Positions 2,400 to 59,455 are shown, numbered from the stretch's first letter. The stretch: 64,000 nt of DNA from Leidyana gryllorum EB-2025a (GCA_048772705.1 JBLWGC010000133.1:62001-126000); one strand, 5' to 3'. Numbers and translations are program-made. Notes: generated by a model not told the origin, from the letters alone.

Positions 2400-4652
2400 T
2401 CACGGAGCAGTTGCTTTGATTCGAATTGCGCGTGGGATGGAGTGTTCTGGACAAAATGAATCGTTCACCGTCACCTTGATGCCCTCGCCCAATGCCCTCT
2501 CAATTTTAGCCGCGTGAGGGATCCATCGGTGCGCTTGCTGCGTTTGGAACAGAATAGGGAGCAAAATACTGGGGTCCGTCGGCAGCGGAAGCTGTGACTG
2601 TGAATCACGGTTTGGTCTCAAACAATCACTTACACTGTCGTGTGTGCAATAACACGTATTGGGCAATTTGGGTGAAGTTATCGAGGTGTCAGAATCCGGC
2701 GGGGGTGCTGAGGATCCAGAGTTCGATGCAGCTGTCGTTTCGCGGTGGTGCGGTCGAGGCGATATCGGTGGGAGACATTCCTTCCGCGTTGGCGAACTCA
2801 AAAGATGAGTGTCCGACACAAACGGGAGCACACCAGAGCCTTTGTGGATATCTTTGATGATCTCTCTCTTATCGTCTCTGTCACGAGGCGAATGGAACCG
2901 CGAGCCTCCAAACACAGACTCAAATGCCGACGAGGACGAGTTGATGCTACTGAAACTCCCCTTTGAACTCGACGAAGCCGACGAAAAGGTCATTCCAGAC
3001 TCATTGGAGGGCAGTCTCGCCAAATCCTCGTGGTCGTCCTGCATACCCGTCCACAGCACACTTCTGCCGCTGAGTCGCGCGCTGGTGGCTACCGCCTCTC
3101 GACTCTTCTTCGAGGGATCGGTGGGCCCCGGAACAGCCGTACGAGTTGTCTTACTGTCAACAACACTGCCGAATTTGCTTCTTAGAGAAGAATCGGTCGC
3201 GGCAGTGTCGCCGGTGGTGGGCTGGCGGTTCACCAAATAAGTCTCCAGCTGCAGATTGTCCGGTTTGACCACCACAGCCTTATTGGCCTCCAACAGATGC
3301 ATCAACCCCGAAAAGGAGTCATCCCGAATAGTTACGTTCCTCTCAAGCAGCAGATCGACAGACGTTTTCCCGTCAGAAGAGTCCAGGCTACACAGATCAA
3401 TGACTTCCATCGCTCGCTCAGTGCGTGTGGCCTCGATGATCGATTTCGATCTCTCAGCCTCATCAGAGTGCGGTAACCCCTCCGTAGTCGCAACAACGTC
3501 GTGAGGCGCCGCAATTGGGACTTTCTCTGGCAGTACCGGAGGCCATTCAGAATTGGATGGGGGGACTATTTGATGGGCGGGGGGAAGACTTGGGTTCGGA
3601 TTCGGATTCTTTGGTACCACTGGACGAGCTTTGAGATTGAGGGGCGGAAGACTTCTGGACTTTTTGGCAATATTTACGGGAGAATTGGCGGCGGTCTTTA
3701 CGGTCTCACACTCTGTTGGGCGCAGAACCCGCGCTTCCTGTTGGTGTCGCAGGGTTTTCGCGCGGCCGACGAGTTGTGGTTCCAAATCTGTGTCTTCTTC
3801 GCCGAGCTCTCGTTGTTCCAGGCGAGCTTCAAATGGGTTCCAAACGGTGAATACGGATTTGGGAGACGCGCCCGGTTGCAGGAGTCGCTCTCTGCGCCAG
3901 TCTCTAATTGCACGATACCGTAGGATTTCCATTAGGCCGTATATATCGCGGTTGACCAAACCACGGGTACAGTTGTCGAGACAATAGGTTCCTTCTGAGG
4001 TCATACTGATCCATACCCGGAACATTTCCATAAACCACAGGTGATCAGCGGCGGGATGCGGGGCCGGGGTGACATAGTACCACTGCCAGAAAGCTCTGGT
4101 GGCAAAGATGCTGGGGTTATTGGTGGGCGGAGCACTGTTGGCTCCGCTTTGCAGAATCTCCGCAAACTCGGGACTGCGGGGCTGGAAGGAGTGCCATCTC
4201 TGCTTCCAGTTGGCGTAGAAGACTTTGAGAGCGGCGTAGCGGCCGCCCGCGGCATCGGCGGCTGGGGTTCGCACGCGTGCGGCGAGTCGTTCCGCCCTCA
4301 GGGGGTCCTGACACAGCCAGCGGAAGGCCGACTCAAAGTAGTTACCCTCGTGATGCACCAACGGCATCGCTTTGAGAACAAAGGTACTCTTCGGGAGTAA
4401 GGCGGGGTCGTCGACAGTGGTGGGGCTGCTGTTCGGGAGCAGCGGCAGCACCGGGGAGGTGGAGTCGTCCACCACCCCGCGGCCGGCCGCATCGAGCTCG
4501 CGATCCCTACCGAAAGAAGGAGGAGATGTGGGAAGCGTTACTGGGGGAGAGGAGAATAGGGGGCTGTCATTTGGCGGCAACTCTCCTCCTTCGGATTCGA
4601 GCCAAATGAGTGTTTGCGAGTTGCTGTGGAGACGAAGTTTCTCGTCTGACAT
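2400..4652 (-). CDS. Hypothetical 750-aa intronless protein with a Trp/aromatic-rich N-terminal domain and Ser/Pro-rich disordered remainder
   Basis: Long ATG-initiated ORF flanked by AT-rich gaps; no family recognised. Confidence 0.75.
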   Translation of the reverse strand: MSDEKLRLHSNSQTLIWLESEGGELPPNDSPLFSSPPVTLPTSPPSFGRDRELDAAGRGVVDDSTSPVLPLLPNSSPTTVDDPALLPKSTFVLKAMPLVHHEGNYFESAFRWLCQDPLRAERLAARVRTPAADAAGGRYAALKVFYANWKQRWHSFQPRSPEFAEILQSGANSAPPTNNPSIFATRAFWQWYYVTPAPHPAADHLWFMEMFRVWISMTSEGTYCLDNCTRGLVNRDIYGLMEILRYRAIRDWRRERLLQPGASPKSVFTVWNPFEARLEQRELGEEDTDLEPQLVGRAKTLRHQQEARVLRPTECETVKTAANSPVNIAKKSRSLPPLNLKARPVVPKNPNPNPSLPPAHQIVPPSNSEWPPVLPEKVPIAAPHDVVATTEGLPHSDEAERSKSIIEATRTERAMEVIDLCSLDSSDGKTSVDLLLERNVTIRDDSFSGLMHLLEANKAVVVKPDNLQLETYLVNRQPTTGDTAATDSSLRSKFGSVVDSKTTRTAVPGPTDPSKKSREAVATSARLSGRSVLWTGMQDDHEDLARLPSNESGMTFSSASSSSKGSFSSINSSSSAFESVFGGSRFHSPRDRDDKREIIKDIHKGSGVLPFVSDTHLLSSPTRKECLPPISPRPHHRETTAASNSGSSAPPPDSDTSITSPKLPNTCYCTHDSVSDCLRPNRDSQSQLPLPTDPSILLPILFQTQQAHRWIPHAAKIERALGEGIKVTVNDSFCPEHSIPRAIRIKATAP

Positions 4653-44270: not shown

Positions 44271-47132
44271 ATGGGGGAAGTAGACAATCACCCCTTGCTT
44301 GGTTCTGAATACAACGTCCACGACGAAGCTTTCGACCTGTGCTTCGTCTTCAGAACACGTCAACACATCAACCGACGAGTTACTCGACTCGAAGGGGAAC
44401 ACAAAATCAAACGAATTTGTTGTGCAAGAGAGACGTATAACCTGAGTAATGACATATCGCAATTGCCCGCCTTCTACCGTCTTGACGATCTCAACCTCTC
44501 CGAGATAACTATCGCTCAACTCAACACATTCTTCTTCGATCTCTTCGTCAGACTCGCCGAAGAGCAATGTGGTGCCATCGTACGGCAAACCACCAGTAGA
44601 AATGGACTGTTCATAATGGTCTTCCTCACGCTACCCGAGCTGGTCGCGAGAGAAGTAGCCGACGAAATGAAGTACCCTCTACAGATCGAACCTACCCTGG
44701 CGCCCCGCGCCTTCTACAAGTGAGCTCCTACCTCTGCCTTTGCTGCTGTGCCCCCTAATTCTCACCCACCTCCAATCTCTCTGTGTGTGTGGGGGGGGTG
44801 TCTTTTTGTGTGTGTGGGGGTGTGTCTATGTGTGTCTCTGTCTCTGTGTGTCTCTGTGTGTCTCTGTGTGTCTCTGTGTGTCTCTGTCTGTCTCTGTCTC
44901 TCTGTCTGTCTCTCTGTCTCTCTCTCTGTCTGTCTCTCTGTCTCTCTCTCTGTCTCTCTCTGTGTCTGTGCTGCTTAGCCGTCCCCTTTGCCGCCCTCGC
45001 CGACATGTTTTTGCATTTACAGAGAGAATCCCCATTTCACTACTCCCTTCAAGCACTTCGATAAAGCCATTGAAGCCGACGACGGGATGGCCTGCATGGC
45101 GACGTATGGCCAAGTGTGGCGGCGTTATCCCCGGATGACTGTGGCGGGTCGAGAAGAGCGTTCCATTTTCACGTGAGTGCCGTCTCCTTTTTGTCTCTCC
45201 ATTTTTAGGTGTGTACAGAGAAATCGATCGCGCGCGTCTGCTGATGCGATGTCTTGAAAAGGTTTTGAGTATTGAAGACATGTGTCAATTAACCACTATG
45301 GAGTGTTATTATCTGCCTCCCCGTCCCATTGAATTGTCTATTCTCACGAGTCACTGGGCATCCTGGCGAAAAATACATCGCTTGGATCAACCCTTGTACC
45401 ACATTCGTAACTATTTTGGCGAAGATGTTGCCTTATACTTTGCTTGGACTGAAGAATATGCCCGAGTACTGATGGTTCCGGCAATTGTCGGAGTACTTTT
45501 TGCCTTTGCTCGGTGGAAATTAGATCCCAAGGAGAACTATAAGTCCATAGCAATGGACATATTCCGAGTCCTCTATTCCATCGGAAGTGCTGTTTGGTAT
45601 ATGTGGTTCATTCAAAGATGGAAAGCACGCCAGGATCTCTTGAAACTCCAGTGGGGGCTCCACCTCACAGAGTCGTCCCTCACCGAGCAACCCGAGAGAT
45701 CCGGGTTTGAAAACGATTCCTGGATTGTGGACCCCTCGAATCCCAATCGAGTCATAACGTGGTACTCTCCCGCGAAATGGCGAATCCGCCAATTCATCTC
45801 TGCGGTAGGGACACTGCTGGCCACAATTACAGCTGTGATCGTCGTAAACGGCGAACTCCACGGTAATTGTAAACCATCTTGCCACACTGTCAATTCCCCT
45901 CGCCGCAGAGTCCATTTTGCATTGGATGAACATTGACGATGATATTGAGGCGACTGTCGAATCTTATTTTCCCGACTGGTTCACGGCTATTATATCGCCA
46001 CGACCAGTCATTGTAGCTCTATTGGCGTTTGGCTGTGAGATTGTGTTCACAGTCGTGTCAGAATCCTTCACTGTCCTGGAAAATCACAAATACCACAGAA
46101 CGTTCGACCGTTCTTTGATCAAAAAGCTCTTCTTATTCGCCGCATTTGACTACTTTATCCCCCTCTACTATCTCGCATTCGTCAAGGTAAGCCCAGATCG
46201 GTCAATCGATCGATCAATTTCTTTCAAACTCCCAATTCCATCAGATGTATTCTCACCCTTGCTGGGACGAGGATCCGGAGGAAGGGCGGTGTCTGAGAAG
46301 CTTGGAAAGCCAAATCAAAACGTTGTTTGTGGTAGCTGCCTTCAGCAATTTAGTTGAAATCGGCAGACCGTAAGTTGTTCGTTGAAGATGTGATACTGAG
46401 TCCTCTGCTGCTCCAACAGACGCATTTTGAGCCGCATCCAACAATGGTGGTATAATCGAAAGTGCGACAAAGCTGCGGCTCCATTTGAAAAGGAGTTTTA
46501 TAAAAGTGCTTACGATGGAACACGCGGAGACTTCCAGGAGATGATGTTCATTATGATGTTAGTAGGCTTCTTCGGGGTCGCGTGGCCCATCCTTTCCGCT
46601 CTGGCCTTCATCATTGTCGTCCTTGAAGTAAGTTTGCTCCTCCGTAAAGCGTGTTCGATCGAGAGACACACACTTTTCGCCTCCAACAGATCAGAGTAGA
46701 TGCAATGAAATTGACACGGTCGCGCCGTCCTTTTCCAAGACCCGCTCATGATATTGGTGCTTGGACAGGCGTTGTTACCACAGTGTCTAACATTACGATT
46801 GTCACCAATATAGCGCTTTGTGCGTTCACGACGTTCGGAAAATCCCTGCCACTGTTTGACAAGTTAGTCATAACTATAGTGAGTTTGTGGTTATTGCAGT
46901 GCGGTGTCATGTTTCATGCGCACAGATATGCACGCTCGCGGCTCACGTCGCGAGAGAGTTTACCAGATGGGGCGGGACCCGAATGCGAGAACAAGTCAGA
47001 TTACTGAGGGCTCAACAAGCAATAGTGGAGTTCGAGGCGACCTGGGGAAAACATGTTAAGAAGGTTGATCTGATGAACACGCGAACGGTTGTTCAGCAAG
47101 ACTGGGCAGCCACGGCAGCACTAACTAAATAG
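44271..47132 (+). CDS. Anoctamin/TMEM16 family scramblase or channel, multi-exon
   Basis: QPLYHIRNYFGEDVALYFAW, LENHKYHRTFDRSLIKKLFLF, DFQEMM...FGVAWP, E|IRVDAMKL..RRPFPRPAHDIGAW. Confidence 0.92.
44776..44970. repeat. Compound (TG)/(TC) microsatellite inside an expanded anoctamin intron (about 44720-44979)
   Basis: TCTCTGTGTG decamers grading into TCTCTG and TCTG repeats. Confidence 0.95.
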
Positions 47133-47133
47133 A

Positions 47134-50066
47134 CTATACAATTTGTGGAGTTCGGAAGGCTGACTCCTTCTTCTCAGGTCCACCTTTTCTTTTAGGGGAA
47201 ACTTGTTGTTCATCGTTCTCCGGCAGAAGCGGCTCATCGAGCCGAGCATTCTGTGTCGTGTCAGGGGACCTTTCCACGTCATCATCGACCTCTTCAATCG
47301 TTTGTGGAACGATTCGAACGTTCGTCAACCGACTGAGATGGCGTACGAAGTGAGCAGCACTATACTGCGGAGGTGGCAGTAACCGTGCTGGAGACACGGT
47401 GCCAGGCACTCTCTCTTGCGAAGGAGGCCAGGACTCGAAAGACCCGCGACTCCGGTCGATACTCTGTTCGTGCTGCTCACTCAGCTCGCTGTCCGAGTCG
47501 GCAGAGATCGGCGTCACGATTCCGCACTTGAGAGCGACAGTCTCTATACATCCTCCCAAGCAAATGGTGGTCACGAGAACCATAGCCAGAGTGGTAGAGA
47601 CAACCAATTGACGGTTATGTTTGGTTGATTCGCCATCAGAAAACTTGGGTAGTGCCAGCGATAGAGCGAATGCAATGGCACCTCTGAGTCCCGACAACCA
47701 CAGTACGAATTGGCATGGGAAGTTCAGATAGGGTCTCCGTCGCACTCCAGCTCCTTCTCGAGCATTCTCAGCCCATGTCCGGGCCACTTCATCATTCGAA
47801 GGGGAGATTTCTCCGCTCTCGTGCATTGAGACCCACACTTGGTGTCCACCCTGGCCTCCAGTCATTACCAGACGTCTCAGCGCGCTGCCGTCATGACCCC
47901 GACTGGTTGGTGGCAAGACACTAATTCCCGGAGGCGCCGGAGAGTGGTCTCCGGGGGCTGCGACTGCATATTGTTCAGCGCTCAGCGGCGGGTTGTCTCC
48001 CTCTCGGAAGGTCGGGTAGGGTGACTTGCGGCCCTTCCCACTCATTTCACTCTCCACTGGGAGCAGAGCCAACGTCTCTCGAGCACGTCCTGAGAGCGAC
48101 GTCTGCCGAGAGAAGAAAGATTCCTCTTCAACAACTTGGGCTGCGCGTCCGAACTTTTGAGACGACATGTTGGACGACAGATGATCAATCCTCTGAGGCC
48201 GACCAGTGGACCGAGCCATCGGGGTATGCGTTAACGACTCCTGGTGGTTCAGAGCACCCAGCAAAGATCGAATTGATGACTTGGCCTGGAACATCTTGGA
48301 TCCAGGATGATGAGGGGTCCAAGCCCAACTGCGCAAATTGTGACCATCACCCGGACACACAGACTCACATTGCGTTCAAAGCCACACACGATGGGAATAC
48401 AGAAATCGCTCTTCCCAGCAGAGTCAACATCAGTGTCACCATTACGGCGTTACGGTGGAAGGCCTTGCCGGATATTATGCTGAACACACAAGTAGAATGA
48501 AGGGCAGCTCGCAGTAAAGGAGCGCTTACGAGTTTACAAACACCACGCCAAAGAGCACATAGATGAAGGATTCAGACAAGACTGCCAATACTTTGAACAA
48601 CAAAGCCGATGAGCGTTGAGAAGTAGGGGAGAGATTCTTCCTGCAAGCACACACAGTGTCCAATACCCAGCGCACACATCAAACTCACAGGCTATAGTGT
48701 CCCATAAACGATCCCAAGACAAAAAGAGTGAGGATACCGGATCCCTTCAATACCTCACTCAGGGCGAAGGAGAAATACGACAGCAATAGTAAAAGCCCCA
48801 ATTCATATTCAGGGAATCTGTCACACAGCGATAAACAGATAAATCAATTAACTCACTTCTTCAAACCCTTGGAAACTCTAAAGGCGGCATACGCGCCCAC
48901 ACTGACGGCTATGCCGACCACCAACGATATCAGTGTAACATGTCCAACTTCTAAAATCACCTGGAGCGATCAACAACCATTTGTGGTCGACCCGTCCTTC
49001 AGCGACGTACCGAGAGCGCTCCAGGTGCAGTGTGGTCGACGAAGAAGAGGCGTTCAACGGTTTTGAAAATAACAATCGCCACTGCATCGTTCAAAATGGA
49101 TTCGCCAAATACTATAGAGAATAAACGTTCATCAGCTGTGAAACGACTTCCGCCCAATATGCTCAAGGTGGCAACCGGATCAACAGCGGACAACAGAGTT
49201 CCCAGAAGCCAACAGTACGCTCTGCGTTCGCGATCGCTGCCTTGTAGACCAAAAAAGCCCCCTGAGTACATAGCATGATACTTAGAATAATGTCCGGTCA
49301 TGCATTTGTGGAGCAGTCGCTCGCACAGGCATCTCTAAGACACGTACACACAACACAGCAGCTCGCCAGCGTGGCGAAGGCAACACGGTCGCAAAGCAAC
49401 AGGCAGCAAGCACGATCAACGAGGGGCAGTTCAACAACGCCAGGTTGATGCCAATTCCGCACGTCCCAGAATCCAGACGCGCGATAATGTCCCCGTGATG
49501 AGCGTCATAAGAGAGCGCAAGGGCCCCGGCCTTCTCGAGAGATCGCTTGGGATGCCTCGCAGCACTCCAGGTACGACCGATTGTTTGCGTTCGTGCACAC
49601 ACGTGTGTTTCGATAGGGTAGATTCGTGCAAGTTCAGTTCACAGATATATGTTACCGGCATAGTAGGCGCCTTCTGCGACAACAAGTGCAGACACAAGTG
49701 TGCCCGCGACAGCAAACCAGAGGATTGCGCCGATGTTATTGAGGAAATTGGGTCGATCTAAGGAGAATCCGGCCTCGAGCACAATCGGGGGCAGGAGGAA
49801 GAAGTAGAAGAACGAAGCATTGAAGTTGAACAAGGCACCGTTTTCGATTCCAAACAAATGAATAGCGAGTCCTACACTCACGCTGTGCTTTCACTATATG
49901 TACAGAGAGGGTTAGCACGTGTGTGGCATTACCCGACAAGTATGGAGGCAGTACTCTGAGGGCAGTGTTTGATCTTGGATGTGTTGATAAAATGGCCGAC
50001 GATGAAGGCGGCCAGCAGACTTGTTGCTGCCAGGAAGGTGACCTGAGCCTGATCGTCAAAGGCCAT
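47134..50066 (-). CDS. Na+/H+ exchanger, CPA1 (NHE/NHX) family, multi-exon
   Basis: FFYFFLLPPIVLEAGFSL...FLNNIGAILWFAVAGT; LSAVDPVATL; FGESILNDAVAIVIF; WLSGLRGAIAFAL. Confidence 0.93.
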
Positions 50067-50216
50067 GGCTAACTATATTTTGGACTCAAAATCGCCAGGA
50101 CTGTATAATTAAGACCGAGGAGGTAGATGAAGTTGCCGATGAGCCTAGAATAGAACAGTTAGCTCGGAGGTCTCTTTTTAGTTTTTAACGAATGATTCAA
50201 AAGGGGGGTAAGACGT

Positions 50217-50971
50217 CTAGGCAACAGGCTCTGGTTCAGCGGTCTTGGCATCGGCCTCCTCTCCGGTAGTGTCAACGGCGGCTTTGTCTTCGGTCACGTC
50301 CTGAGCGGTTTCTTCGTCGGCCTCAATCTCATCCTCATCGGACACAGGGTCGTCTGCGATAAGAGGAGTGATGATGGCAATAACCGATGTGCAAAGGCAG
50401 CTTACCGAGATCATTGAAGTCCATTCCACCCATGTCACCCAGGTCTCCCATACCGCCCATGCCTCCCATTCCTCCCATGCCGCCCATCATGTTGCTCATA
50501 TCGAAGTTGCCAAAGTCCATACCGTTGGCTTGGTCGCCGTTGCCCTCCTCCTCATCGCTATCAACCCAACGAGACCAGTCGACTTTGAGGTTGCTGCGCT
50601 TGGTGGAGTCGGAAACGAGTTTGGGCCATCTCTCAGCCTCCTGCTTCTCGAGCAAAATCATGATGTTGCGGGCAACAGACCACTTGCTTCGCTGTGTAGG
50701 GAAACGAGAGTGTGACACCGACAGGCTCATGTCCTGGACTTACGTTGAGGTCAACTTTGCCGTAGAGGGGAAGAGTGAGTTCGTACTCTTTGCCATCTCC
50801 CTTGCACTGGACAGTGAGAGATTGTTCCTCAATTGTAACTTTTACATCCGTGGGGTCGACGACCTCAACGGTAACGACAGCGGAAGTCTTCCGCTGAGCC
50901 CAAGTAGCAGTCGGCTGCACCCTGCGGAGACAAATGATGGGGAGGCATCAGATATCGACCACTTACGGCAT
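50217..50971 (-). CDS. SBA1: Hsp90 co-chaperone p23 (CS domain), 4 exons with a 5-nt first coding exon
   Basis: QPTATWAQR, WPKL...LKVDWSRWVDSDEE, GGM-rich acidic tail; ATGCC|GTAAGT micro-exon at 50971. Confidence 0.9.
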
Positions 50972-51059
50972 GATGAAAGTGGAAGGGGTGTTAGTGAGTG
51001 GAAACTATTCTGAAAAAAATTAACGGAGGCAGGCGGGTTCTACTGCGACTGTCCCAACC

Positions 51060-52024
51060 TCAAAAATGCTCAAGCACTTCTTTGGGCAGGGGACGTGTCT
51101 CAACTATCTCCTTGACCGTCTGAAAAGAGGTCTCATTTCTATGTTGGGCACAATGATCCGATCGTACCGATTCATCGTCAACTTGGTCGAAAATCTCCGC
51201 CTCTCCAATCCCGCACCAGTCGGTCTGTAATTGCGACCCCTCTCTCTCTTTCTCACCAGCCGGATTCCCATTGATCGGCCATTCGCACAATTTCAGTCCC
51301 TCACACCGTTCCAAAATCGGAACATTCTTAATCGAACCGCTCAAGACACACGACACTGTGTCGTGAACCCTCAACTGGTGGTGGCAGAGCATTGATGTGT
51401 GTGTGTGTGTGTGTGAGCTTACCTGGCGAGCGACTAGCCAGAAAGTGCAATTTGAACAGTCATCAATGGAGACCGAGGTGCGTGCGGCCGGCAAGCTGAG
51501 ACGACGGAGTGAGAACGGTGGTTTGTTGTCGCTGTCACTCACCAAACACGACATGTCTTGAGTTCCTGGAGTCTGGCTGTCTCCACGATCGCCTTGACGA
51601 TAATCGTTTTATCGCAAATACCCTTCAATACCAAAATACCATTCGCAGGGATCTGAGTCTGAGTGATTAGCAAAACAGTCTCGTCGTGTTGGGGGTCAGC
51701 CGCGAGGTCAGCTCTGCTCCGAATACTAACAGCAGCCACACCAGTATCCGCACCCTCTCCTCCTCCAGTGTCAGTGCTCAGCAGCACCGGCTGTTTGGCG
51801 AGTTGGGACTCGTCCGCCTCCAAGTTGGTGGTGAGGTGTTCCAGATTTACCCGTTCGGCGGCACGGCGGAGGGCGGCAGCGCTGTCAAGATACCACCGCT
51901 GTCGGCGGGGAGGCAGCCGGGAGTGTTTGACGTCGTTCTCGAACGCTCGGATATCATGTGTACTAGGAGTGGTGGATTGTAGGCTGTTGAGTCGTTCCTG
52001 GAAAGTCGCCTCTAAGCCCGACAT
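51060..52024 (-). CDS. TBCC: Tubulin-binding cofactor C
   Basis: Beta-helix SVSIDDCSNCTFWLVARQ|LRVHDT...PILERCEGL...FDQVDD. Confidence 0.78.
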
Positions 52025-52050
52025 TTACCCTATATACTTTTATTTTCTAC

Positions 52051-54275
52051 CTAATGCATGTGGGGGTGAACAGCATTCTGCTGCTCCCCGGATTCTGCCA
52101 TTGCCGCCTCCTCAGCCTGAACAACGCGATGCCAATTCACACCTCTGGGCCCGGTATTCGATGTTATACGAGTGTGATTCACCAGATCTGCAGCCTTCTT
52201 CCATTCACTGATCTTCTCGCCCGTCGTAGACTCCCATTTTAGAATATTCATAGACTCCTCCCACGATATGGGAATCCCCAACTCTGGCACAACCAATGTC
52301 AAAGTCAGACGATCGGCGTCCCGATGCAGTGTCTTTGGCTCCACCTCTGTCTCCAAATCCCGTATCACTTGTTCAGCCGCCGACTGCAACAATCAATCAA
52401 TCCTACCCACATCTCGCTCAAATCACTCACCCCCGCATCAACGATGGTGTCCGCCAGTGATCCCTTTCCGCCAGATCGCACCCAACCGGCAGCGTAAACT
52501 GGACACTGACCAGACTCAGAACCCGCAATCTTATTGCCTTGCGGGGCAAAGTTCTTCTTCCGCAGATTGTTCTGAAATCGCCATTCACGTTGTCACCCCT
52601 CTCACTTCCCTTACGTTATGCTCGGCGTCATAGAAAGTTTCCCAAGGCTTCTGTGGCGCTGTCGAGCCAACAGTGCCATACCCTAAGCACTTGACAACCA
52701 AACGAATGCGATCAAGCAGCTCCCGGGGAGCATCATCGGCGGGATTGGAAGCCAACGCATCTCTCGCAATCCGCCCACCCCGTGGCATATACAGTTTAGT
52801 CTTGGCAATTTCCACTCCAGTCACAGTGTCTTCCATTCGCGGGCCCTCGGTCAAAATCCGAGTCGGTTGATTACAGAATCGCAGCCACACATTCACAGCG
52901 TCCGGACTACGCTCCACCGCATCCAATCGGGGGTTCCCGTTGCGATCCAAGTCGGCCTCAGCTACAAGTCTCTCATAATTAGCTACACCTTGTTCTATCA
53001 ATGCCGCCATTCGCTGAGCCTTCCGATCACGCTGCAATCGAGAATCAAATCATTTGCCGTTGTCAACCACACACGTGTGTGCAGAAGCAAGTGGGTGTCT
53101 CCGCTGCCTACCTTCAGTTCCTTGGCACATGCGGGCAAGTCCAAGCTGGCTTTATATTCATCGGGCTTCACCAACACTGTAGCTTTGTCGCTGACACCAA
53201 ACAACTGCAAACAAGACCATGGGAGATGATTCGGCAGCAACTTCTCGTGTCAGTACCTCTCGTAGCGTGGCAATGTCCCAGCTGGATTGCAGGAACCCAC
53301 GGCGACCAATCATCTGGAAATCTCGAATGTATTTGCCATGGAGTTGATGCAGAAGACGACGGCCTGCTGGCGGCAGGTGGCGACAATCAATAGTCTCGGG
53401 GTCTCTCAAGAATATACGCACTATATCAGTTGCCACGTTGCCTTGGCTGAATTCAGGATCGAGGACTCTGCTATGCGGTGGGGTCTTCGGAGCGAGAGAG
53501 CTCACCCGATCAGGACAACTCGATCATCTACATTCGTGGGGTCAAAGAAACGTCCGAATCCCCGTGCTACGCGACTTGTGATTCCTCCCTGCTCAGACGT
53601 AGCCGAGACTGATCGAGCAAGGGAGTAATCCAACAAGTGCGAATCGATCGTCCATTGACCCAATTCGATCATAACACCCGGGACTTTGCGATAGACGTCA
53701 TACAAGTGCCCTGGAGGGGCCAGCGGTCGCCCGTTGTACCATTCAATAACATCTTCGGCGGTGGTGACCCCCTTGGCGAACTCCCCGGGGATGGCCAAGT
53801 GTGGATGGTCTTTCCGCTCAGAGACGCTCGCTATTCCGGTGCAGAGAATGACTGCGTCATAGTTCTTGCGCAGCATTCGCAGCTGCAGGAAGCGTCCCAA
53901 CTCCACCCCGCCGAAGAACTCGAATCTGAAACTATCATCGTCCACTTCTCTATAGCGAGCCGCTCCTTCAACCAAAGAGTCTCCTACGGCTTTGATGCTT
54001 GGGTGGTCTGGTGCGACACCGAGACGCACCAATCCCAGTGGGACCAAAGAAGCCTCGAAGACATCAACCTAAGATCAGATGATTGATCGGTAGTGGGGAG
54101 AGTTGCTCACTTGGAGAGGACAGGGCGCCGGGTCCTTTTGCGTCCAGCGTTTCCCTAAAGCGCGGAGGGTGGCGAGTCCTGCAGGTCCCGCGCCACATAG
54201 GGCTATACGATAGGAAGGAGGATGGTGGGTGAAAAGCTTAGTGGCATAGAATCGACTGCGGGGGGCTAATAACAT
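52051..54275 (-). CDS. FDXR: Mitochondrial NADPH:adrenodoxin/ferredoxin reductase, multi-exon
   Basis: GAGPAG, GLVRLGVAPDHP, YDAVILCTG, WYNGRP, IG|QGNVATD, IGRRG, VYAAGWVRSG; N-terminus MLLAPRSRFYATK resembles a mitochondrial presequence. Confidence 0.9.
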
Positions 54276-54296
54276 TGAGAATAGTTGTTTTTGCAC

Positions 54297-55298
54297 TCAA
54301 GAGGCGCCTAGAGAGGCTTCGCGTTCAGAACCAAATCGAGCAGTGGCACGTCTACCCTTAAAGGGATATGGGATATGTGTGAGGGAAGATGAGGAGGATT
54401 GTGTGGACACAGGTCTCGGACGAGGATGATACTGGGGATTGTTGGAATCGGATGAGATGGGCAACCGAGACTCATAGGAGATTGGCAATCTGGAACTCGG
54501 GTCTGTACTGGACCCCTTGAGGATACTGGTCGGGAAGAACTGAAATCTAGAAGGAGGTATGGGTTTGGTCCTCGGCTGGTAGGCAGGATCATCGAAGCCA
54601 CCTTCGAATGGAAATCTCCGGGATTCTGCACTCAAACCGCTAAGCAACCAGTTGCTCGGCCGGCTGCGCGGAGGGGGACTTCGAATCAGCACCGGATCGT
54701 CTTCCGAATTACTGCCACATAACTGGTGTTGGTGGCCAGGGAACAAGGGAATGCGTGTACTATTGGTGGACATCGAGGGTGCTGGACTAAAAACGCCGAC
54801 TCGAGCGTCCCACTCCTCCGTACCTTCGAGCAGGAGACAATTCGGACTGCCTCCGTAATTATTATCACCCCCGCGGACAGCAGCAGCTCCACCGCCGCCG
54901 CCCCCTCGGTGATCGACTCCCAATGAACTACTATCCACCTCACTCGCCAGATATCCATCTTGATAGACATAAGCTTGTACATCCGCATCGTCGTAGTCGC
55001 AGCCGTTGCCATCGCCGCCCCGACGATCCTCGAAACTCGCGTCGCCGTCACGGGCTAACACAGGGTCAAAAGTGACGCCAGCAGTTCGCTGCTTGGCATA
55101 GACTATGGGGACTTGGCCATCGCGTGTTTCCATTAGACATTTTCTCGGTACTTCAATCATTGGGTTTAAGAACCGACCTGAAGCCGCCCGCGTGACGCTT
55201 CGAGGGAAGACGCGGTGATACGGTCGACACGGAAAGCCAGAATCTGGCCCATATTCACGCAGACCTCCGATGGTGACCGACCTCTGTACCGAAGCCAT
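54297..55298 (-). CDS. Hypothetical intronless protein of about 333 aa
   Basis: First ATG of ORF 54297-55502 downstream of the MIP18 stop (MASVQRSVTIGG); fills the gap almost exactly; no family recognised. Confidence 0.6.
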   Translation of the reverse strand: MASVQRSVTIGGLREYGPDSGFPCRPYHRVFPRSVTRAASGRFLNPMIEVPRKCLMETRDGQVPIVYAKQRTAGVTFDPVLARDGDASFEDRRGGDGNGCDYDDADVQAYVYQDGYLASEVDSSSLGVDHRGGGGGGAAAVRGGDNNYGGSPNCLLLEGTEEWDARVGVFSPAPSMSTNSTRIPLFPGHQHQLCGSNSEDDPVLIRSPPPRSRPSNWLLSGLSAESRRFPFEGGFDDPAYQPRTKPIPPSRFQFFPTSILKGSSTDPSSRLPISYESRLPISSDSNNPQYHPRPRPVSTQSSSSSLTHIPYPFKGRRATARFGSEREASLGAS

Positions 55299-55309
55299 CG
55301 CATTAGCAG

Positions 55310-55967
55310 CTAAAAAATCGTCATCAAACTGATGTCCGTGACTTCGTGATCGGGTCTGTCCGAGGTTCCAACACCACCAAACCAGACGTTCCGTTTGACC
55401 GCATCGTCCAATGTCCGAGTTCGGCTCACTCCCTTCACAATCATCCCCAACACATTCGGGTTTTCCAGCGCAGCAATCACTCGTTCTGCGACCAAGTGTC
55501 AATAGTACAGCCCAATGTCAATTTCTCACCCTTGTCTGCCAACTGTTTGTTGATGGACTTCTCTGACGCATGAGAACCCGGTGTCACGCGCACCCATACG
55601 CTGTACCCCACCGGCAGTGACCATAACAAGACACAGCGTAGCATCAACCCTATCAATGTGGCCTGTGAACAGTGCGGTACAGTCGGCGTGAAGCGCAATT
55701 GCACTCGCTGCCCGCTGACTTGTATCATATCCAGTCCCACTACACCTAACTCCTCCAGACTCAAAGGGTACTCGGGGTCTTTAAGTCCCCGTATAATCTC
55801 GAAGATTTCCTGCAGCCGCAACCTGTCAAAGAAAGATCTCCATTGGTCCTTACCAATGCGTCAATAGGTTCATATGGGTGGTTTGGCTGTCGTAACTCAT
55901 TCGCTGAAGGTACTGTCAACCTCTGGACCAGAGATTTGGATATAACTGAGGGCGCGGGGTTCTCCAT
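55310..55967 (-). CDS. CIA2: Cytosolic Fe-S assembly component MIP18/CIA2 (FAM96), 3 exons
   Basis: EIFEIIRGLKDPEYPLSLEELGVV, FTPTVPHCSQATLIGL, PGSHASEKSINKQLADK|ERVIAALEN. Confidence 0.93.
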
Positions 55968-55981
55968 GCACAGTTTTTTTG

Positions 55982-57589
55982 TTATTTCTGCACGAACTGT
56001 ACGAAAGGAGTTATTTCCATTGAAACATAGGGATAGTAATCCCCTTCTTCCTCGGCACCAGCAGCACCTTCGTCCTTCACCCCAAAGTAATTCTTCCCAA
56101 TCTGATGCTTGGAAGCGAACAGATCGTCCAACTCCCGACGCAACTTGGTCTCTTTCACTTTCGGAGCCAACCGTATGATGAAAGCGCTGAAGTCGGGTGG
56201 TAAACCGTATCGCAACGTCGCCTCCACAAATACACGCACAGCCTTCAGATGAACCCAGTTCGTGAAACACTCAGAGAAGGCGGCTGACACAATACGCGAC
56301 AGCACACTTTCCTGACGAGATCGTTCTGCCTCCAGTCGTGCCCGTTCACTCGATTTGAGCTCATATGCTCGTTCACTAAACTTGAACTCGCGAATTGTGA
56401 TACTGCAAGAAGTGGTCGGCAAGAAACAACGACGCGGGTGGGATAGCAGGGGAGACACCGGTGATTCGAACAACGCCTACCGATGATCGCGGGCTTTCTC
56501 CTTCACGATGTCAATTCGTGACTTGAAGCATACGAAAGTCCAGATTGAAGCACCGTCTTTATCAATTGGACTGTACTTCCTGTGGGAGCACACACGTGTG
56601 TGTGTGGGAGAGCTTCCGGCAGACATGATCCAGCTTACTTGTGACTATATGGCACGACCTTGTCGTCCCACTTCCAATACTTGTCAGCAAAGCCTGTCTC
56701 AGTTCTTCATAGACGCAGACGCATGCCCTCGAAATTCACTTGAACGCTCACCTGGGTACAATGGCTACTACGGTAGTGAGATGCTCCGTTTCTATGAAAT
56801 CCTGCAAGCCGGCCGAGCATGGGTGAGGACGGATAGTGTTCAAGACTTACCTGTGAACTGCATATCTGTGGAGTCAGTACATCGATCAGATCTCGTGAGA
56901 CGAAAGACAGACTATGCAGCATTTAGAATACAGATCCCGGCTTTACTCTCACCCCTCTGACTTGTTGCTGGCTGTTGAGGTAGTTTTGATTTCAGCAAAG
57001 AGAGCCGCCTTGACCCGTACTTCCTCGTCCAATTTAGCCACATTCTGCAGAATTCACCTTCCAGTTCAAGCAGCCTGTCGAGCGAGTTGTCGTTACTCAC
57101 CGCCACCAGTTGATCAACATTCTGCTTGAGCGACCGGTTGCGAGGATACTTGGCTTCATCCCAGATGAACCGTCCCAGATACTGTTCGGCGGAGACTTGA
57201 GAGGAAGAATTGGAATGTGTGTCTCAGATTAGATGTCTTGAGACTCACAAGTATTCCGTTGCCAAACGATTTTGAACTCTGTGCTCGGATCTATTTCCAG
57301 GCCCATACGCTCAAGGCGACGGCAAGCTTGCTCAACGAACGAGTCCTGTTTGACCAGATCATCGGCCATACGCACAAGGTCATCTAGTCGCCCATACTTG
57401 AAGTTCTTGGGAATGTCGAAGACCTGTGTGAGAGAATGGATCACGTGGGTCGAGTTGATACTGTGTGCTTACGGCAGAGAAATCTATGAGACGGCCACCT
57501 TGTAACCGGGACTTTAGCAGAGAGTACATGGCCTCCCGACTGTCCTGTTCAGTAGGACTGGCGACTATCCAGAAGTCATTCCGTGACAT
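55982..57589 (-). CDS. VMA5: V-type ATPase subunit C, multi-exon
   Basis: FDIPKNFKYGRLDDLVRMADDLVKQD, WDEAKYP, FTNWVHLKAVRVFVEATLRYGLPPDF, DYYPYV. Confidence 0.93.
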
Positions 57590-57610
57590 CGCCGTGCGCT
57601 GTGGTGACGA

Positions 57611-58690
57611 CTAATTGATGTTGTTTCTTTTGAGCTTTTCAATCACAGAGAAGAATATTGGACCACATCCTTGGCACAAGTCTGGCAAAGCCAGCAATCC
57701 ATATTCTGTTCTACGTAAGACCATTCTCTTGGGCCCCTCGTCGAGTCCCTCGGCGTCTAGCGAGATGACCAGTTGCTGAGAGTCCAACTTGGAGTTGAGT
57801 TCTGCCACTACAGTCGCCTGGGGAACAGTTTGCAGCTTTCCGGCGAATTTCTTGAGAGCAGCGGCGACTACTTTGTCATTCTCAGCCTCGCTGAGCGAGC
57901 ATGTGGAGTATACCAAACGGCCGTCTCGGGCCGCTAATTGGTCCAGGGCGGTGTTGAGCAGCTTGACTTGAACCTCGCTGATACTTTTGGAGCTCGCAGG
58001 GGTCCAGTTGGCGAGAGTCCCATCCTTGAGGCGATGCCGATCACTCGAGCAAGGTGCGTCCACGAGTATCCTTGTATATGGGCCGTATCGGCTGATCTGG
58101 GTGTTGTTCTTGGCCGCGTCCGAGCAGACGACCTGGATTGTGCCTCTACGTTGCGGAAAGTACGAGAAAAGGTTGGTGGATAAGCGTTGAATCCGAGGAT
58201 GGCTGCTCTCGTTGGCGACCATTCTGACGCCCAGTGCTTTGGGCTGCTCCGGGGGGAAGAGTTGACTGGCTATCAACAAGGCTTTGCCACCAGGTGCCTG
58301 TGAGAAGGATTGATTGCGAAGGCTCTGTCTCGCTATGGGTCTCTCTTGAACTCACTGCGCATAGGTCGAGAGCGTTGTCTGAAGGACGAACATTGAGGGC
58401 CACGACGGGAAGGATGGATGCCGGATCTGTTCAGGAAGTCCAAAGATTATATCAGTTATTAGAGAGAATTGTGTTATACCCAAGAAATAGTCCACTTTGT
58501 TATCAGTATCCTGAACGGGTGATATAAAGCAGTTCGGAGCTAAGAGGGGAGTGGTTCCCCCTGGCGGCGGCGCGTGGGCTATACGGGCGAAGAGCTGAGG
58601 ATCCTCTATCATGGCTTGTATGAGGTTGGCACGCTCCTCATCGGACTTTACTGGGAGGCTTTTGGCCCATTCCTCCGAAGAATTGCTCAT
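57611..58690 (-). CDS. RNA m5C methyltransferase, RsmB/NOL1/NSUN family (NSUN3/4-like), 3 exons
   Basis: YFL|DPASILPVVAL...LDLCA|APGGK, ILVDAPCSSDR, LVYSTCSLSEAEND, GPIFFS. Confidence 0.88.
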
Positions 58691-59432
58691 ACGTCCTTGC
58701 CCAGCAGCAACAGAAAGCCCAAAATTCCAAGGACTCCCCATTTGAGACTGAAGTGGGAAACCATCGAGGGAGACTCCGGTGTTTCTTTCCACTTACGCAG
58801 GATAATCATTAAGCCAAATTGTGACCATTCCAACCTTTGGCGCGATACTGCATAGATTGTGAAGAGAGTCTAAAATCTCAGTTTGAACGTACCCAACAGC
58901 CTTTCCAACAATATCAGAGTTTCGCAGCCAATTCTGTCCTTCATTATATAATCCTCTGTCATCAACGCGGTTGTTGTCTCCCTTTGTGAGCAGCCACGAC
59001 TCGCCCTCAACTCTGTGTGTGTGTGTGTGTGTGTATTGTGAGATCTGAGTGTGGCTTACGGCTCGTGGACACTCAGGACTCTGTGTACAATGGGGATGCC
59101 TCGGCTTTCCACTTGGTACACAACAATGTCTCCGGCGTGGAGTGTGTCGGCTCCGGTGAGGAAGAGTACGTCTCCTCTGTACATTCCGGGCTCCATGGAC
59201 CCACTGAGTACGACGACCACAGGAGACTCGCAGTTAGTGACAGTCATGAGACATCTCCAGAGTACAAAGGCCGACAGAATGATACATCCTGTAGTGATAA
59301 CTTGATTGAGGGCCTAAAGTTGCAATAGTGGTGGGAAAGGGTCTCGAGTTTCACCTTGCGGGGTTTGCGGAGAATGCGTTTGATGTCACTGACGAGATCG
59401 CTAATACCTAAGCTCTCTATCAGGCTGCCCAT
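58687..59432 (-). CDS. SEC11: Signal peptidase complex catalytic subunit Sec11, 5 exons
   Basis: [57 protein letters not shown]|[19 protein letters not shown]. Confidence 0.95.
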
Positions 59433-59455
59433 CTTGAGTTTTTTTATTGAAGAAT

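Follow-up and report, generated by a model that had tools for sequence, protein, structure and literature searches.

A near-gapless run of nine co-oriented genes in the gregarine Leidyana gryllorum as a possible row of overlapping transcription units

Nine co-oriented genes are separated by almost no DNA

We analysed a run of genes on the minus strand of a 64,000-nt stretch of Leidyana gryllorum EB-2025a DNA (GCA_048772705.1 JBLWGC010000133.1:62001-126000; hereafter the window), at positions 47134-59432 counted from its first letter. Nine genes stand here head to tail in what we regard as a stretch of extremely compacted gregarine nuclear genome. Judging from the sequence, we favour with moderate confidence not a dedicated operon but a series of independent transcription units that overlap, each with an A/T tract close to its start. 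Read in this way, the run is a case of an already known kind of expression and not a new expression system.

In transcription order, the nine real genes are SEC11, an NSUN4-like gene (NSUN), V-ATPase subunit C, MIP18/CIA2, an orphan open reading frame (ORF), FDXR, TBCC, p23 and NHE. The distances from stop codon to ATG along the run are -4, 21, 14, 11, 21, 26, 88 and 150 nt, and the intergenic share amounts to 331 of 12,299 nt (2.7%). A first-pass annotation, made by a model from the sequence, had listed the same gaps, and re-reading of the stops and ATGs gave identical values. Its title spoke of ten co-oriented genes; the head-to-tail arrangement was upheld, and nine genes were counted in an analysis that included no search for micro-ORFs. 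Direct reading of the boundaries did not open large gaps, and homology backs most gene ends, so that the ends and gaps appear to be fixed for most of the run. The observation of a near-gapless gene run is confirmed.

The genes of the run are functionally unrelated, and nine same-strand genes in a row among approximately 35 would occur with p ~0.05 if orientation were random. GT-AG introns of 41-59 nt, mostly 41-56 nt, with GTRAG donors and YAG acceptors were found in eight of the nine genes, and the orphan ORF has none. The source assembly comprises 15.5 Mb in 237 contigs and has a GC content of 53%. Boundaries were determined by direct reading of the minus strand. Searches against Pfam, PDB and relatives were run on single exons, with joined translations used only for reading frames, and the contig-wide statistics below come from one 213.5-kb contig (C133).

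Diverging genes are as close as tandem genes

At the upstream end of the run, the ATG of SEC11 (59432, minus strand) and the ATG of an Spt5-like gene (59456, plus strand) are separated by 23 nt. This spacer (59433-59455) is essentially one seven-base run, of A on the minus strand and T on the plus strand, and is a candidate minimal two-way promoter. The first plus-strand exon of the Spt5-like gene has 19 codons and joins an acidic Spt5-like ORF via a canonical GTGAGT...CAG intron. Four further back-to-back pairs with a shared A/T tract were found on the 213.5-kb contig, with 17-36 nt from ATG to ATG. In three of these four pairs one start was placed by a Pfam alignment beginning at profile positions 1-10; the placement is clear for DPM2 and PPPDE, and weak for V-SNARE.

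Diverging genes cannot share a polycistron, and the genome must therefore initiate transcription from almost no spacer DNA, that is, from very small promoters. With spacers this small between back-to-back genes, the tight tandem gaps need no operon explanation. Spacers are small in tandem (-4 to 26 nt) and in diverging pairs (17-36 nt) alike, as compaction would have it, and as diverging genes lie no further apart than tandem ones, the spacers include no distinct operon class. Gaps this tiny characterize the genome rather than 47134-59432 in particular.

A-tracts accompany gene starts

An A-tract in the window was defined as at least seven A in eight bases on the sense strand. The window contains 19 such tracts, 11 of which are followed by an ATG within 37 nt, and ten of these 11 ATGs open at least 40 codons. 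Among the ATGs preceded by a tract are the starts of SEC11, V-ATPase C, MIP18, FDXR and TBCC; NSUN has no A-tract before its ATG. An identical nine-base A-run stops 5 nt before the ATG in SEC11, which is the first gene, and in MIP18, which is internal. More generally, the A-tract of the leading gene recurs before internal genes, where it may act at the level of DNA or of RNA. AT-rich islands were also located near gene boundaries in a 12.9-kb region, with 7 of 15 lying within 40 nt of one.

Of the 74 sense A-tracts on the whole contig, 20 have an ATG no more than 40 nt downstream that starts an open frame of at least 60 codons. Used as a control, the remaining 60 sense triplets average 6.5, and ATG ranks highest (Poisson p 2e-5). 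For T-tracts the count was 16 of 74 against 8.4 expected. The distance from tract to ATG varies between 0 and 34 nt, which is easier to reconcile with a start-site or promoter element than with a fixed Kozak context. Base composition upstream of the first ATG in long ORFs was swamped by noise from internal exons and shadow ORFs, and counts of stop-to-ATG and ATG-to-ATG distances against control triplets were too noisy for the same reasons.

At the V-ATPase C locus of Gregarina niphandrodes, the public annotation gives spacers of 267-611 nt, and an A-run lies 3-30 nt upstream in four of six ATG starts. As A-runs are present at starts despite these wide spacers, the tract belongs to gene starts across gregarines rather than being a by-product of compaction. 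A conserved start-proximal motif is thus seen as an enrichment on the contig and also in G. niphandrodes. In the G. niphandrodes region KK211726.1:194583-216024, T-runs of six to eight T were additionally observed 1-30 nt past the annotated stops at 3049, 11442 and 12481, and A-runs were observed just upstream of ATGs. The stop-side T-run and the start-side A-run may be a signal pair in that species, whereas in the more compact genome of L. gryllorum the gaps mostly keep the A-run only.

Search for signals of operon-type expression

The spliced leader of dinoflagellates and perkinsids was not found in the 15.5-Mb assembly, in which the search returned only one hit with three mismatches. No Rfam families were detected in the window, and no tRNA in the region. 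A pyrimidine run before an AG was present at two of the eight junctions (orphan and p23), and the other junctions have A-tracts or nothing. This agrees with the statement in the first-pass annotation that no consistent polypyrimidine-AG acceptor precedes the ATGs. An AG does lie at most 25 nt upstream of every ATG, which is close to the chance expectation. For a spliced-leader operon, neither the leader sequence nor an acceptor at each downstream cistron was thus found.

Sites resembling sigma-70 promoters numbered 11 (8.2 +/- 3.3 expected) and sites resembling intrinsic terminators numbered 9 (10.2 +/- 3.2 expected), none of either kind being located in the gaps. A bacterial-type operon is ruled out by the introns in eight of the nine genes and by these chance-level promoter and terminator matches.

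Comparison with other gregarines

The closest database proteins of the run are from gregarines. MIP18 is 61% identical to its counterpart in Protomagalhaensia wolfi and 63% identical to that on a Logan contig; for V-ATPase C the identity is 49% with Polyplicarium and 44% with G. niphandrodes; and for NSUN it is 40% with Gregarina sp. Poly. The gene order of the run is kept neither in G. niphandrodes nor in L018, a Logan SRR11177099 contig from a related gregarine, on which MIP18 is flanked by gaps of 91 and 181 nt. With the order lost in two relatives, the cluster does not qualify as a conserved operon.

NSUN has its best relative in Gregarina sp. Poly, as ORF p5 of a transcriptome contig that is 14,129 nt long and holds five or more ORFs; ORF p5 is uninterrupted where the L. 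gryllorum gene has introns. The contig suggests spliced RNA coverage spanning several genes, which is predicted by overlapping and by polycistronic RNAs alike.

The related contig also has a back-to-back pair (L018:2006-2033), made up of a WD40 gene on the minus strand and an ORF of 90 codons on the plus strand, whose ATGs are 22 nt apart. Relatives may thus have tiny spacers between diverging genes in common.

Transcription of the run and alternative explanations

The gene ends, the gaps, the tiny back-to-back spacers, the association of A-tracts with starts, and the absence of bacterial signals and of a dinoflagellate-type leader were observed directly. From these we predict where transcripts would start and end. 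Each of the nine genes would most likely be its own RNA polymerase II (Pol II) transcription unit. Transcription would start at or just past the short A/T tract, a few to approximately 35 nt upstream of the ATG, and such a start would leave very short 5' untranslated regions (UTRs). The remaining promoter would lie inside the 3' end of the upstream gene, and 3'-end formation and termination of that upstream gene would take place either between the two genes or within the downstream one. Adjacent units would thus overlap, and occasional read-through RNAs covering several genes would be expected as a by-product. The first-pass annotation had offered two mechanisms. One, overlapping transcription with promoters in or abutting the upstream gene, gained support from the 23-nt spacer between diverging ATGs and from the internal A-tracts. 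The other, polycistronic mRNAs translated by reinitiation or leaky scanning, is less likely, and is most credible only for the ATGA of SEC11 and NSUN.

Several points weigh against separate units. The lack of a tract before NSUN, together with the ATGA overlap with the SEC11 stop, fits translational coupling on a bicistronic RNA, and no pair in the run is a stronger candidate for true bicistronic coupling. On the sense strand the A-tract is more strongly enriched than the T-tract, which would also fit a role at the RNA level, for example as an A-rich leader for translation. RNA coverage of several genes in the gregarine group is probably real, and multi-gene mRNAs have been reported in Cryptosporidium (10.1101/2025.01.17.633476). 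The statistics stem from a single contig, and our ab initio gene models were unreliable.

Some of these points are what would be expected if mature cis-spliced polycistronic mRNAs, holding two to several cistrons and made without trans-splicing, were the main templates. Downstream cistrons would then be translated by reinitiation, leaky scanning or internal entry, perhaps with help from an A-rich leader. We give this explanation a small but real chance. It accommodates the gaps of -4 to 26 nt with the ATGA overlap, the strand bias of the tract and the place of the NSUN relative on a long transcriptome contig, and it has precedents in the transcripts of 2-4 genes that cover ~10% of C. parvum genes (10.1101/2025.01.17.633476) and in the coexisting mono- and polycistronic forms of Encephalitozoon cuniculi (PMC2803860). 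However, the upstream cistrons are 186 to ~900 codons long and contain many internal ATGs, so that neither leaky scanning nor ordinary reinitiation can work. Minimal promoters exist in any case, given that back-to-back genes are just as close, and internal genes bear the start-proximal element of the first gene. Gene order is not conserved, and an assembled RNA contig cannot separate one long RNA from overlapping short ones. A more specific version, in which all or part of the run (for instance SEC11-NSUN) would be expressed as long cis-spliced polycistrons with internal cistrons served by ribosome-recruiting A-tract leaders or by efficient reinitiation after long ORFs, seems decidedly unlikely. 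We consider it quite unlikely that the mRNAs are monocistronic and strictly non-overlapping, with Giardia-like UTRs of a few nt at both ends fitted inside the 11-26 nt gaps and only promoter DNA overlapping the upstream gene. Such an arrangement is impossible for the ATGA overlap, and the 11-nt gap leaves hardly any room for two UTRs, even though in four gaps the A-tract is placed either on the stop or between it and the ATG. In Giardia, 5' UTRs do measure 1-14 nt and some 3' UTRs 9-16 nt (PMC3610916), but in the compact genomes studied 3' ends usually enter the neighbouring gene (PMC2803860, PMC3610916).

The small gaps could also be an artefact of wrong gene models, with fused genes or missed exons. 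Our home-made dynamic-programming gene finder, in three versions, did merge neighbours via chance GT..AG pairs, the coding bias being weak, and the orphan ORF has no homolog; the models from this gene finder were left out of all statistics. Eight of the nine genes, however, belong to distinct conserved families, and at both termini their exons agree with the ends of relatives or profiles, which makes such an artefact very improbable. Resolution of a polycistronic precursor by spliced-leader trans-splicing, as in nematodes, tunicates, kinetoplastids and dinoflagellates, is extremely improbable in our view. The co-oriented genes and very short gaps would suit it, as would the AG before each ATG, were this not near chance. 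We know of no apicomplexan that trans-splices. Against it stand the absence of a dinoflagellate/perkinsid-type leader from the 15.5-Mb assembly and of Rfam families from the window, the presence of a pyrimidine run and AG at only two of eight junctions, and the failure to find a leader in C. parvum (10.1101/2025.01.17.633476).

Relation to known systems

The proposal of an undescribed expression system was not upheld, as overlapping transcription with ultra-short UTRs is documented (PMC2803860, PMC4654818, PMC3610916) and so are multi-gene mRNAs (10.1101/2025.01.17.633476). In E. cuniculi, 5' UTRs of <7 nt and start-proximal motifs were found together with transcription overrun and with mono- and polycistronic RNAs side by side (PMC2803860). 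For T. hominis 140 multi-ORF transcripts were described (PMC4654818), a paper that also cites Williams et al. 2005 for overlapping transcription in compact genomes. In Giardia 81% of tail-to-tail pairs overlap (PMC3610916). The Porospora genome has a coding density of 84%, in a paper that does not deal with transcript architecture (PMC9250747). Our literature search on gregarine polycistrons and G. niphandrodes RNA-seq found no paper on gregarine transcript architecture.

The run resembles the genomes of microsporidia (E. cuniculi, Antonospora locustae) and nucleomorphs in its spacers too short for UTRs and promoters, its start-proximal motif and its functionally unrelated genes, and ultra-short 5' UTRs and transcription overrun would be expected in L. 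gryllorum as well. It differs in belonging to an intron-rich apicomplexan with 53% GC and many introns of 40-55 nt, in its very short spacers (11-26 nt) and in having an A-tract as its motif instead of CCC/AAATTT signals. Cryptosporidium is generally placed close to gregarines. The polycistrons of C. parvum share with the run a compact apicomplexan genome, co-oriented neighbours, the lack of a spliced leader and Kozak-like contexts at internal ORFs, whereas the L. gryllorum run has nine genes, is known from sequence alone and has internal genes with their own start-proximal tract. Giardia offers a likely analogue in its very short 5' UTRs and in its pervasive 3'-end overlap between neighbours. 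In contrast to the intron-bearing run, it has almost no introns, and it falls in another eukaryotic supergroup. Spliced-leader operons (Caenorhabditis, Oikopleura, kinetoplastids, dinoflagellates) are similar in their co-oriented runs and short intercistronic distances, and different in that L. gryllorum has no detected leader and no consistent acceptor.

If each gene does start from a tract of about ten bases located 5-35 nt before its ATG, with the rest supplied by the coding sequence (CDS) of the neighbour, these would be among the most extreme minimal Pol II promoters and UTRs. Unlike those of microsporidia and nucleomorphs, this genome is intron-rich and GC-balanced, which makes it a good system for studying the minimal DNA needs of promoter, terminator and translation start. 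Nine-gene polycistrons with internal translation, if true, would extend the Cryptosporidium finding to gregarines at the nine-gene scale. Tiny gaps also make automatic annotation fuse neighbours, as happened with our dynamic-programming models, and the A-tract can help to place start codons.

Genes and spacers of the run

The CDS of SEC11 signal peptidase (58687-59432, on the minus strand like all genes and gaps in this section) has five exons, with Pfam Peptidase_S24/S26 on exon 2. By direct reading its ATG is at 59432 and its TGA stop at 58689-58687, and the introns are at 59354-59314, 59059-59013, 58892-58848 and 58796-58748. The spliced reading closes with the expected hydrophobic tail and then TGA, and appears to match human SEC11A from end to end. 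The intron at 58848-58892 is stop-free and its 45 nt are divisible by three, so that its retention would add 15 residues in frame; its excision presumably restores the alignment with human SEC11A.

The NSUN4-like RNA methyltransferase (57611-58690; Pfam Methyltr_RsmB-F) begins at 58690, its ATG overlapping the SEC11 stop as ATGA (58690-58687), and ends with TAG at 57613-57611. Its N- and C-termini align with full-length relatives (P0001-P0005). The 21-nt gap to V-ATPase C is at 57590-57610, and an A-rich tract (57624-57631) lies within the last NSUN codons. A 48-nt GT..AG pair at 57599-57646 crosses the stop of NSUN, with its far end 9 nt short of the V-ATPase C ATG, and its use would join both genes in frame. 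Its donor is off-consensus and the pair is therefore probably due to chance, but it illustrates how neighbours can become fused in annotation.

V-ATPase subunit C (55982-57589; ATG 57589, stop 55984-55982) has many introns and Pfam V-ATPase_C matches on three exons. These cover profile positions 32-79, 91-123 and 243-371 of 371, with the profile end near the stop, and the 39-codon first exon fills positions 1-31. The sole in-frame stop upstream of its ATG is that of NSUN. In the 14-nt gap that follows (55968-55981), an A-tract at 55973-55983 overlaps the TAA stop.

MIP18/CIA2 (55310-55967; Pfam FeS_assembly_P; ATG 55967, stop 55312-55310) has introns at 55853-55810 and 55529-55486. The homolog on L018 has the same two intron positions, a first exon of 37 codons compared with 38, and a similar C-terminal tail. 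A C-terminal extension of approximately 35-40 residues past the usual family end was observed at 55310-55430; it is coding, and not the result of a drifted stop, because an S/T-R-S/T-I/L-D-x-A-V stretch is common to the L018 homolog. PDB searches with the first exons of V-ATPase C and MIP18 (38-39 residues) gave nothing informative. The 11-nt gap to the orphan ORF (55299-55309) has a T-run abutting the MIP18 stop.

The orphan ORF (54297-55298; ATG 55298, stop 54299-54297) has 333 codons of low complexity. A word search among 5.8 billion proteins returned no relative, ESM Atlas gave no usable match, and comparison with the ORF downstream of MIP18 on L018 gave no significant match. It is followed by a 21-nt gap (54276-54296) with an A-tract at 54285-54292. 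FDXR, a ferredoxin/adrenodoxin reductase (52051-54275; ATG 54275, stop 52053-52051), was identified by a PDB match of its exon 53505-54068 to residues 34-134 of adrenodoxin reductase 1cjc (E 8e-17). The first exon encodes a presequence and a GxGxxG motif, and since the second begins at adrenodoxin reductase residue 34, the first exon with this motif is the N-terminus.

The 26-nt gap between FDXR and TBCC (52025-52050) has an A-tract at 52038-52046. Tubulin cofactor C, TBCC (51060-52024; Pfam TBCC; ATG 52024, stop 51062-51060), has an in-frame TAA directly before its ATG. An 88-nt gap (50972-51059) with a T-run at 51012-51020 separates it from the p23/CS-domain co-chaperone (50217-50971; Pfam CS; ATG 50971, stop 50219-50217), in which an intron (50966-50922) begins 5 nt past the ATG. 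The last gap (150 nt, 50067-50216) has an A-rich island at 50171-50193 and leads to the Na+/H+ exchanger NHE (47134-50066; ATG 50066, stop 47136-47134), recognized by Pfam Na_H_Exchanger on two exons.

Neighbouring features

Downstream of the run, a plus-strand anoctamin gene (Pfam Anoctamin, four exons) ends at 47005-47007 or, if a further intron is removed, at 47130-47132, and the tail-to-tail spacer between anoctamin and NHE is accordingly 126 or 1 nt. If the stop at 47130-47132 is right, it lies 1 nt from the NHE stop (47134-47136), and the two 3' ends must overlap in antisense. Between a ubiquitin-like gene and anoctamin, at ~44700-45130, we observed a microsatellite-like stretch rich in TC and TG, which gives Cys/Val/Leu/Ser repeats in all plus frames.

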